A stretch of DNA of 62,548 bases, counting the filler, from Sluysia triapertura (lineage: Eukaryota): the NCBI GenBank assembly GCA_046118255.1. It is 5 parts of 5 records of this genome, joined end to end, with 100 filler letters (N's around TTAATTAATTAA, not from the genome) between each part and the next. Parts side by side here need not be neighbours in the genome. Positions count along the whole stretch, not along the records: positions 12,002 to 23,962 come from JBJNIA010152605.1; 4 more parts are not named here. The stretch is one strand, 5' to 3'. The number at the start of each line of letters is the position of its first letter. Position 1 is the first letter of the stretch. The notes beneath the pieces were generated by a model. That model was given only the letters and a program-made list of their open reading frames with translations, had not been told where the DNA came from and did no database searches. A program made the translations under genes and the position numbers. Positions 12,425 through 15,400 of this stretch are shown here, piece by piece.

Positions 12425-15400
12425 CTACAATTCTTTAATACCAATTTCTTGATTATTACGTTCTCTTTCTTTGTTCAATTGCCTTCGTCGTTTTTTCAGC
12501 AACCTTTGACGTTCAATATTTAATTTATAAGCTGTCCTTTGGAAATTGATATTAGCTACTGATAAAATGAACCACAGAACAATCAAAAATATTGTCCATA
12601 GAATCAAAATAACAAAATAACTTAGAAATATCGACAAACTTGGTAATTTATCGTCACTTTGTTCAACCTAGAAAAATAAATGTCATATATTTTTATAAAT
12701 ATACAATATGTTAGACTTCATAAAATCGACTGACCGGGAATCTGAACCTGAGCCCTATGATGATTAAAAAACATGTATTAATATAATACTGTTTTAGAGA
12801 AGGAAAGTAATCTTCTTTCTTCTATTCAGGGACCTTATAGGACATTGTCGCGATATGCGTTATTCGAGGACTCCACAGCTAGTCGTACACACTGTCGTAC
12901 CATGGTCTTGATTTCGGTCTTGTGGAAGTCAAGTGCCTTGAGAAGCTTGTCATTCTTGGGATCCCATGAGCCCAATGCTCCAACGATGAATGTATCCAGA
13001 GACACCTTGCACTTCAGTTGTTCATGTAATTTGCCCTGTAGATCAGAATACTTAGCAATATTGGTGGTTCGGGCCATTTCGAAATTTTTCTGCAGGTCCA
13101 TGGGAGTTTTGACATCAATCAAGAACAGTTGCGATGAGAAAGTACCGCGGGCCTGTATGTCAGGTTGTCGAGTGTCACCGATAATTGGTGTAGGCGAATC
13201 CTTGATGACCGAGAACCCCATTTGGGTCATTTTGTCCGCTAGGTAATTAAGGATTTTGTTGTGCTAGACTGTTTTGGTTTTACTTGTGTGAGGACATAGA
13301 CATAGCACGTGTAGAAGGGATTCAGATTCGAAGTCACACCATCAACATGATACTGCCTAGAAAAATAAATGTTAAATATATTTTTATAAACATACAATAT
13401 GTTAGACTTCATAAAATCGACTGACCGGGAATCCGAACCTAGGCCATATGATTCTTTATCCACTGAGCTATCAGACAAGTTTAACAATCTTGTTTTATCA
13501 TAGTCAATTATTCTATGGCACTTTAGGCCTGTACCTCAACATATCTTACCCAATTCAATTATATTTGACCTCAAACATCTTGTAAATCATTAATTTCAAC
13601 ATCAGAAGGGTATTCGATGTGTACTCACGAAATGTTAGACATCATAAAATCGAACCCGGGCCCTCTCGCTGCACAGTTCGTGGGTCTACCCACTTTAGGC
13701 CTCTATCCCAACAAATATACTGAAAAATAAAAATATATCAATTAGAAAAGATTCCTGAGTAGGTTGAAGAATGGAAAACGAGATAGATGTCACAATGAAA
13801 CTTTATTCGATTGCTTATAAACAGTTGTGAGCTATAGGATGCTCGCGCGAGCTCTTTGTTAAATTATTCAATGATTTGAGAGCATATTTAATGTTGCGTG
13901 TCCATGGCCAGAAGAAAAGAGAATAAGAACTTTGAATTTTATTTTGAAAAATGAAATTAAAATAATATGACTGGAAAATTCCAAATCAAAAAAATCCAAG
14001 GTCATTATGGAAATAATCGCAACTAGCTGCGCTGAAGCTGATCGCGCTTTTAGTTATCGTTACAATGAAAAAATCTTCTCATTTTATGACGATCTACTTA
14101 AATTAGAAGAATTTAATCCTAACTCGTACGTTAAATCTTTTTTGAAAAATCATCGCTCTGCTCTGGATAAATCTAAAAGATCACAAGACCTGAAACACGA
14201 AGGAAATACAGTACGGAAGCTTCTAGTATAAGTTGTAAATATTTTCTTTTTGTAGTTATTTTTTCTTTGCTTTTTTGTTTGTTCTATTCCTTATTAATAT
14301 AATATTGTTGTTTTTTTGTATAAAATAAACCACTTAATTAACATTATTTTGGTTTTTTATGTCAGTCGCAGTGATACATTGCTAGAGAACTAGTTCTACG
14401 ATTCTCGAGACAAAAAAGAATGAACCCATTGTTAAAAATTTTATAGCTTCCCAGCACTGCTTATAAAGTTTATTTTCATACATTTGCGATTATAATTTAA
14501 ATTAATGTTAACACTTTTAAAAATGGTACTTAAAAATAAATAAAGCTACTATACCTACATGGATTAGAAATTTTGAAGTTGGTTCTAAATTCCATGCATT
14601 CTCAGTTTTAGACCGTCTATAACAAAAATATGTACCCTCATCGTTCATTTTAACTACAGAAAATAGCAACTGACAATTTTCAGCCACATAAACTCTTTCA
14701 TTAAGTACCGATCGTTGATTGAATACGTAATTCCCACGACGCCATTGTACAGTTACAGCGGTATCATTACAGACATCTGCAAACGAATCACTAAATCCAC
14801 ATGATAGTCTTTCATTTTCCATATCTTCAATATACAACTTATCAATAGATCTCATAGAAAATGTTCGATCACCAATCAAACTCATTCTTAATTTGTTTAT
14901 ATCTCTGGTCATTGCTAACTTAACTATATCCAAAGGATCTATTTCGGGACATTTAATATTAGCTACTATTTCTCCAAAAGGAGTAATAATTGAATAGGGA
15001 TTACCGAACGATTTTATTTGTTCCAAGTGACTAAAAAATGAAAAATGACATGGTAAAATTAAATTAGGATTTTTGGGAAATAATTGTACATGTAAATTCA
15101 ATGCCAAATTATCTGCTTTAGTTTTAGCAGCTTGAAAAGCACGACCACGTTGAGATGGTGGCATTTTACGATAAGCATAAAACGGTTCAATTGCAATTTG
15201 AAAAGCTTCATAAACGGAAATTTCTAAAGGACTTAGCGGTCTCATTTCGGTAGAATTATTTGGAAATTCGATATGACAACGATAAATTTGATGCAAAGTA
15301 AATACATCACACAGATTTTTGTATTGTGGTTCTTTTTCAAATTCATAAAACAACTTCACTAAGTCAGACTCGAAGATGATTTTATTATATAAATATTGTA

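Follow-up and report, generated by a model that had tools for sequence, protein, structure and literature searches.

Endonuclease-bearing long interspersed nuclear elements (LINEs) of the restriction-like endonuclease (RLE) type are a model for site-specific, target-primed integration, which is now applied to gene insertion, and the positioning of their second-strand cut is poorly understood. A locus in the genome of Sluysia triapertura (GenBank assembly GCA_046118255.1) raises the question of how far that cut can fall from the first nick. Within a 62,548-nucleotide (nt) stretch composed of five joined parts of this genome, here referred to as the window, a 594-bp fragment of an RLE-type element lies on the minus strand (12762-13355) between two direct repeats of about 95 bp, next to the transfer RNA (tRNA)-like head of a repeat resembling a short interspersed nuclear element (SINE). 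Our analysis makes it probable, though not certain, that a truncated element of the NeSL group was inserted by target priming into a degenerate, tRNA-derived SINE-like repeat and that the second strand was broken ~95 nt downstream.

The direct repeats bracketing the insert

In a global alignment, the repeats at 12667-12761 and 13356-13452 were identical in 89 of 97 columns (91.8 %), with one 2-nt indel. Local alignment within wider windows ended the identity exactly at these bounds, with a score of 76 compared with a maximum of 15.5 in 500 shuffles. The original prediction, made from the sequence alone, that two direct repeats of ~92 % identity bracket the element exactly was borne out by these alignments and shuffles, and its observation that an A box precedes only the upstream (5′-side) copy held as well, the motif TAGCTCAGTGG lying at 13470 to 13460. 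Neither filler nucleotides nor deletions were found at either junction of the insert. Because the hexamer AATCAT is common to both sides of the 3′ junction, the position of this junction is ambiguous by up to ~5 nt, and the size of the duplication is accordingly ~95-100 bp.

Each repeat is mosaic in makeup, combining 19 nt of low-copy head with a high-copy SINE core of 34 nt and a trailer of 42 nt. Copy levels were judged from sequencing run X1, the only public run with the locus, whose Logan contigs were compared with the window at 80 % likeness; the depths given here are summed over contigs and did not serve as copy numbers. The run yielded one exact match, a 301-nt contig of single-copy depth (14.8) that spans 12430-12730 and provides the sole cover of the trailer at 12667-12700. 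The single-copy depth of the trailer shows that the repeat is duplicated sequence of the locus, and neither element sequence nor the consensus of the abundant SINE. The ~95-bp repeats are a genuine, locus-specific duplication with the geometry of a target-site duplication.

It is extremely unlikely that the repeats represent two separate, independent members of one SINE subfamily, or were duplicated in assembly, with the element merely lying between them. Such an origin could account for the 34 of 95 nt that belong to the very abundant SINE core; however, the identity runs 42 nt and 19 nt past the core into low-copy sequence and ends exactly at the insert, whereas the abundant family diverges from the locus to either side of the core, as loose ends at 12742/13433 and 13622 indicate. 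There are eight differences between the two copies, which speak against collapsed or duplicated reads, hence against an assembly artifact, and for an old and genuine duplication.

We also considered the 95 nt as a 3′ tail shared by LINE and SINE and rejected this idea. The repeat holds the single-copy trailer and the low-copy head, the consensus of the abundant SINE differs from it on either flank of the 34-nt core, and a related, more decayed element elsewhere in the window (copy 2) lacks such a tail.

Identity of the insert

The insert contains 42.6 % G+C, versus 26.7 % for the surrounding AT-rich piece. A single reading frame runs from 13353 to a stop codon at 12837-12835; it is interrupted by two in-frame stops (13344-13342 and 13266-13264) and by no frameshifts, and its translation reads VSC*WCDFESESLLHVLCLCPHTSKTKTV*HNKILNYLADK...RQPDIQ...LIDVKTP...GALGSWDPKN... 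(asterisks mark the stops). By tblastn, the insert resembled residues 910-1077 of the 1079-aa protein P0002 (E value of 6.5e-34, 38.6 % identity, the match beginning at 13353), as well as the C-termini of three more proteins of ~1060-1090 aa. When the 142 residues free of stops were searched exhaustively with HMMER, 306 matches were returned, the long ones at extreme C-termini; the best full-length match was again P0002 (residues 938-1076, E value of 1.2e-24, 38 % identity over 141 aa). Pfam gave no match with the 131-aa frame of the insert.

The consensus of 20 full-length relatives reads CRRC....ETL.HVL.HC.........RHN.IL...LRPDLV...IIDVK.P.E. It is fitted by C*WC...HVLCLC, HNKIL, RQPD, and LIDVK of the fragment, in which both invariant Asp columns (D972 and D986) are kept. 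The fragment thus displays a C-terminal CCHC zinc knuckle together with a PD-(D/E)xK RLE, the combination that identifies RLE-bearing retrotransposons without long terminal repeats (non-LTR retrotransposons). The reverse transcriptase domain RVT_1 was present in 20/20 of the nearest full-length relatives and Peptidase_C48 (Ulp1) in 5/20. Three of the four best relatives (P0002, P0004, and P0031) carry Ulp1, and the fourth, P0014, has the protease in open reading frame 1 (ORF1). NeSL elements, as well as one Utopia element, are characterized by a Ulp1-like protease at the N-terminus (Kojima & Jurka 2015, PMC4640811).

The fragment itself lacks the Ulp1 protease. It also lacks the reverse transcriptase: as the copy starts only at residue ~910 of ~1079, 5′ truncation, with 13355 as its end point, has removed this domain. 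Judged by these homologies, the insert is the 3′ end of a NeSL-like non-LTR retrotransposon of the RLE type from which everything upstream of the zinc knuckle is gone. The earlier assignment to a 5′-truncated RLE-type element agrees with the tblastn and HMMER matches, the catalytic motifs, and the two Asp residues.

The contigs of the distant relatives (L001, L006, and L007) hold whole elements with almost no flank and contained no tRNA and no useful terminal repeats. On L001 (4250-4436), the full-length P0002 relative ends in (TAC)n directly after a 187-nt 3′ untranslated region (UTR), which suggests a microsatellite-associated NeSL-type element. On L006 (356-3211), Ulp1 of the P0014 relative resides in a separate 951-aa ORF1 and is not fused to the reverse transcriptase protein.

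The target of the insertion

The tRNA-like head into which the insert is set carries a perfect A-box-like motif and, beyond the junction, a B-box-like motif; both internal boxes of an RNA polymerase III (Pol III) promoter are thus present, at a spacing shorter than in tRNA. The minus-strand sequence upstream of the insert is ...CTTGTCTGATAGCTCAGTGGATAAAGA|ATCATATGGCCTAGGTTCGGATTCCCGGTCAGTCGATTTTATGAAGTCTAACAT, after which comes the AT-rich trailer. The D-loop-like GGATAAAGA immediately precedes the 3′ junction, which falls between the A and B boxes, where the D-arm borders on the anticodon arm; the motif positions therefore agree with the original prediction both on the place of the junction and on a bottom-strand nick between the two boxes of a tRNA-like head. 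The 3′ half of the head (T arm and acceptor) fits planarian tRNA-Glu at 22/25 positions, and its D-arm is weakly similar to the planarian tRNA-Arg-TCG printed in PMC4640811 S6.

The 34-nt core GATTCCCGGTCAGTCGATTTTATGAAGTCTAACAT is extremely abundant in X1, where hundreds of contigs cover the core and body with heterogeneous flanks; the head variant with this A box is low-copy, with 10 contigs at 13456. The low-copy head and the divergence of the abundant family from the locus identify the target as a low-copy, degenerate variant of a tRNA-derived SINE head. The window holds three copies of the SINE core versus 0 expected, and the core had no match in prokaryote-genome or viral contig collections.

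Further units of the same family adjoin the head, arranged head to tail. One runs from ~13712 to 13542, with its own tRNA-like part and core (13653 to 13632), and a further unit starts at 13541. Very many X1 contigs cover 13528-13621, with loose ends at 13541 and 13507, and the depth is single-copy beyond 13716. Many of the contigs start at 13541, and in many an A-run follows ~13507, which looks as if a short form ended there in poly(A). The 15 nt GATTCCCGGTCAGTC, present in the majority of the family, are missing from the unit at 13680 to 13632. The features of the locus and copy 2 are listed in Table 1.

Table 1. Coordinates of the insert, its flanking repeats, the adjoining SINE-like sequence, and copy 2 within the window (arrows give the minus-strand direction)
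Feature	Position	Strand	Basis
Downstream repeat copy (in element orientation), read as target-site duplication	12667..12761	-	alignment, exact bounds
Downstream copy, B-box-like GGTTCAGATTCC	12748->12737	-	motif
Downstream copy, high-copy SINE core	12742->12709	-	contigs of run X1
Downstream copy, AT-rich trailer, 42 nt, T-run at end	12708->12667	-	contigs of run X1
3′ untranslated end of the element, 73 nt, finishing ...CATGTTTTTTAA(TC) at the repeat junction	12762..12834	-	alignment to LIN15_SM end
Remnant RLE frame, 142 codons + stop, catalytic RQPD and LIDVK	12835..13263	-	HMMER, consensus
Decayed CCHC zinc knuckle VSC*WC..ESLLHVLCLC, same frame, two stops	13264..13355	-	translation, tblastn
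Upstream repeat copy, original continuation of the tRNA-like head	13356..13452	-	alignment
Upstream copy, B-box-like GGTTCGGATTCC	13439->13428	-	motif
Upstream copy, SINE core	13433->13399	-	
Upstream copy, AT-rich trailer, 43 nt, ending TTTATTTTTCTAGG	13398->13356	-	
5′ part of tRNA-like head, A-box-like TAGCTCAGTGG (13470->13460), D-loop-like GGATAAAGA	13453..13494	-	motifs
Adjacent SINE-like units, same high-copy family	13495..13715	-	X1 contigs, core copies
Copy 2, divergent, more decayed related RLE element, P0002 residues ~886-1076	22185..22757	-	tblastn

Probable insertion by target priming

The proposed course of events starts from the observed homology and truncation of the insert, the exact bounds of the repeats, their locus-specific content, and the positions of the motifs. 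The endonuclease would nick the antisense strand of the tRNA-like head immediately 3′ to the D-loop-like motif (sense GGATAAAGA^ATCATATGG), and the freed plus-strand 3′-OH at 12761 would prime complementary DNA (cDNA) synthesis from the natural 3′ end of the element RNA (...GTTTTTTAA). Reverse transcription would abort after ~594 nt, the other strand would be broken ~95 nt downstream, just past the T-run (...TTTATTTTTCTAGG^TTGAAC), and fill-in of both 3′ overhangs would yield a target-site duplication of 95-97 bp. We infer this order of the nicks, as well as the element's own enzyme as the cutter. The retained 73-nt 3′ UTR with its TTTTTAA end, combined with an arbitrary 5′ end, would be the signature of target-primed reverse transcription. 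In R2-type elements the bottom-strand cut is fixed, while the top-strand cut is not strictly determined (PMC5035012); since top-strand cleavage varies in RLE elements, the 95-nt stagger is most simply a property of one abortive insertion. The insertion itself is dead on arrival and decayed.

Several observations weigh against this explanation. A single insertion constitutes its whole support, and reads or contigs spanning either junction, as well as an empty allele, were not listed among the X1 contigs. ARAGORN called no tRNA in the head, and Rfam gave no tRNA match even at E<=10, so that the head is a degenerate tRNA derivative and not a tRNA gene. X1 contigs are few at 12762-12800 (depth of 199 at 12789 versus ~21,900 at 12806), and the 3′ terminus of the family is therefore not independently fixed. 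Finally, the comparison with the planarian elements LIN15_SM and LIN25_SM, discussed below, relies on short supplementary-figure sequences obtained by optical character recognition (OCR) and not on a Repbase consensus.

A different course, in which a break or stalled fork in the SINE was repaired by capture of retrotransposon cDNA or DNA and the 95 bp were duplicated by fill-in or template switching, appears quite unlikely to us. It would make the event a one-off, in keeping with a short, truncated fragment, a stagger far above the usual length, and the lack of a long duplication at copy 2. However, the insert stops at what appears to be the natural terminus of the element (3′ UTR and TTTTTAA) and not at a random internal point, its junction falls at the same place in the tRNA-like fold as that of a known tRNA-specific relative, and the junctions show neither filler nucleotides nor deletions.

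We regard as very improbable that the downstream 95 nt were carried in by RNA, with readthrough from a sister SINE to the T-run followed by homology-guided insertion elsewhere. The repeat does close at a T-run able to stop Pol III or to mark a transcript end, and 28 nt in an X1 contig that joins positions 13095 and 13399 (see below) hint at relatives of the trailer elsewhere. Yet the nick would have to coincide exactly with the position homologous to the RNA end and would lie 95 nt from the D-loop site used by the relatives, and a trailer common to loci at 92 % would be needed, whereas 12667-12700 lies under one contig of single-copy depth.

Other copies of the family

If target-primed insertion accounts for this copy, the next question is whether the long stagger belongs to the family. 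Between 46 and 102 distinct X1 contigs covered each variable position within 12806-13303, and one further copy aligned up to 13355 and then continued for 116 nt that differ from the window. The family is thus present in multiple copies, including longer ones. In one contig, 13095 is linked to the core at 13399 via 28 nt similar to the trailer. Its shorter side is AT-rich and measures 24 nt; as a lead only, the joint might represent another truncated copy in this very place, or it may be due to chance. A search of metagenome contigs with a conserved 18-nt motif gave four chance matches without protein homology.

Copy 2 (22757 to 22185) is ~28 % identical to P0002 and contains several in-frame stops. 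It had been noted earlier that the copy at 22185-22760 has no obvious tRNA flank, and this proved correct: a tRNA-like flank, a SINE-like flank, and a long flanking repeat were all looked for at copy 2, and none was found. An exact 16-nt repeat, ATATATTAAAGGAGGA, occurs at 22099-22114 and 22217-22232, 118 nt apart, with one copy in the last codons of the copy 2 RLE and the other downstream of its stop; the pair may have arisen by chance in AT-rich DNA or may be a remnant of copy 2's 3′ junction. The sequence of copy 2 about 41 nt past the stop, ...CTTTTTTG|TGATGAAT, is reminiscent of the LIN25_SM flanks in print, which start with TGAT.

It is unlikely that the whole family is specific for the tRNA/SINE head and always cuts the second strand ~95 nt downstream, as an R9-like lineage with long target-site duplications would. 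A nick position as in the published tRNA-targeting planarian family, a top-strand break right after the T-run that closes the SINE-like unit and may serve as a landmark, and the many landing pads that a multi-copy family would find in a very abundant SINE core all agree with such a habit. The contig joining 13095 and 13399 might add a second truncated copy abutting the same site, but this joint may be fortuitous given its short, AT-rich side. Copy 2, moreover, has neither a long flanking repeat nor a SINE flank, and the apparent duplication of LIN15_SM amounts to ~40 bp and not 95 bp. Contigs on the non-core part of the repeat are few (depth of 41-157 at 12747-12758 and 13444) compared with dozens on the element body, which indicates that, at 80 % likeness, no continuation into this flank is visible for most copies.

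The original prediction of a family that cleaves the second strand ~95 nt away was not supported: the stagger was seen at a single copy, copy 2 has no long repeat, and top-strand cleavage varies (PMC5035012). The bolder scenario of an abundant flatworm NeSL-type family that moved from tRNA genes to the heads of a high-copy SINE, with its second cut fixed at the T-run ~95 nt downstream, strikes us as improbable; if true, this would be a LINE parasitizing SINE heads and, within the NeSL group, the first lineage whose long duplication is constant as in R9.

Comparison with known elements

The insertion that we favor finds its closest parallels among the planarian NeSL-related families, of which LIN15_SM is tRNA-Arg specific and LIN25_SM is tRNA-Glu specific; NeSL-1_TV is tRNA-Pro specific (Kojima & Jurka 2015, PMC4640811). 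In the machine-read text of S6 Fig of that study, which prints only the last 26-43 nt of LIN15_SM and LIN25_SM, the former ends in ...ataatatttttaa and the latter in ...aaacgttttaa. The end of the insert, ...taatacatgttttttaa, aligns to the printed LIN15_SM end in 21/27 columns and shares its terminal TTTTTAA. The 3′ flank of LIN15_SM resumes right after the D-loop GGATAAGG of tRNA-Arg, and its printed 5′ flank extends into the T arm (PMC4640811 S6). The two flanks of LIN15_SM would thus overlap by ~40 nt, an apparent long duplication in an OCR reading across different contigs.

The nearest relatives of the insert share with LIN15_SM and LIN25_SM the NeSL architecture, and the locus shares with them a tRNA-type target and an AT-rich 3′ terminus. 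LIN15_SM further resembles it in a junction directly after the D-loop (GGATAAGG there, GGATAAAGA here) and in a target duplication that is long for a LINE. We infer kinship with planarian tRNA-targeting families of the LIN15/LIN25 type. The G+C content of 26.7 %, the EF-hand-like exons, and the likeness to the planarian LIN termini are in keeping with a planarian or other flatworm but are no proof of one. Unlike in these families, the target here is a degenerate, tRNA-derived SINE-like head and not a tRNA gene, the ~95-bp duplication runs past the tRNA-like part, and the reverse transcriptase domain is missing from the copy. The earlier suggestion of a possibly undescribed flatworm family that nicks tRNA heads is superseded by the relatives specific for tRNA-Arg and tRNA-Glu published in 2015 (PMC4640811). 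Flatworm NeSL relatives that nick tRNA are known; what is new is this instance, its unusually long duplication, and the SINE head as a target.

With NeSL-1 of Caenorhabditis elegans, Utopia, and R5, the insert shares the C-terminal zinc knuckle and RLE, its closest full-length relatives share the Ulp1-like protease, and there may be a common preference for multicopy small-RNA genes. In contrast, the targets of these elements are spliced-leader, U2 small nuclear RNA, or 28S genes, and the target duplication of Utopia is 0 or 20 bp (PMC4640811). The insert also differs from members of the NeSL clade in keeping neither reverse transcriptase nor protease sequence for placement in a tree.

R2 elements (R2Bm and R2Tg) have an endonuclease of the same fold family and follow the same integration logic. 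The sequence likeness is marginal, the solved R2 proteins matching the fragment weakly (E value of 0.05), and R2 differs in targeting 28S ribosomal DNA (rDNA), where it usually leaves small deletions or duplications. The R9 element of bdelloid rotifers, known from work attributed to Gladyshev and Arkhipova in 2009 (Gene 448:145, cited in PMC5035012), is a precedent for a very long duplication, said to measure 126 bp. However, R9 belongs to the R2 group, inserts into 28S rDNA, and has a long duplication that is constant in the family, whereas the present element has NeSL-like relatives and a tRNA-like target, and the long duplication (95-97 bp) was seen in one copy, none being detectable at the related copy 2.

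The 95-bp duplication around a truncated copy adds one more data point on the second-strand cut and suggests that the top-strand break can fall far from the bottom-strand nick, outside the recognized RNA-gene-like target. Should the stagger recur at many copies, the family would offer a natural system for long-range second-strand cleavage, with SINE heads as safe harbors for a LINE; should it not, the dead-on-arrival insertion is an ordinary one, by a flatworm element of a kind described before.

Other features of the window

On the minus strand at 12425-12637, a frame of 70 aa begins 30 nt past the downstream repeat and encodes a hydrophobic stretch and then a basic tail. The insertion may lie in or beside an exon or UTR of a host gene. 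An intron-less open frame of 495 aa (14517-16004, minus strand) has a C-terminal immunoglobulin (Ig)-like domain (V-set, E value of 2e-5, under the Pfam cut-off). A word search found no homologue of this frame and no exact record, and the Atlas returned only generic Ig clusters; the frame may encode an Ig protein that is secreted or membrane-bound and specific to the lineage. At 19387-19490, inside overlapping open frames on both strands, a 35-nt unit occurs in three tandem copies (83-94 % alike). On the plus strand, two short frames (17201-17371 and 17607-17747) contain, by eye, the EF-hand-like motifs DTDDSGEISREELEDY and DADNSGTITLEEF and resemble exons of a small calcium-binding protein, a type of protein that is common in the teguments of flatworms.

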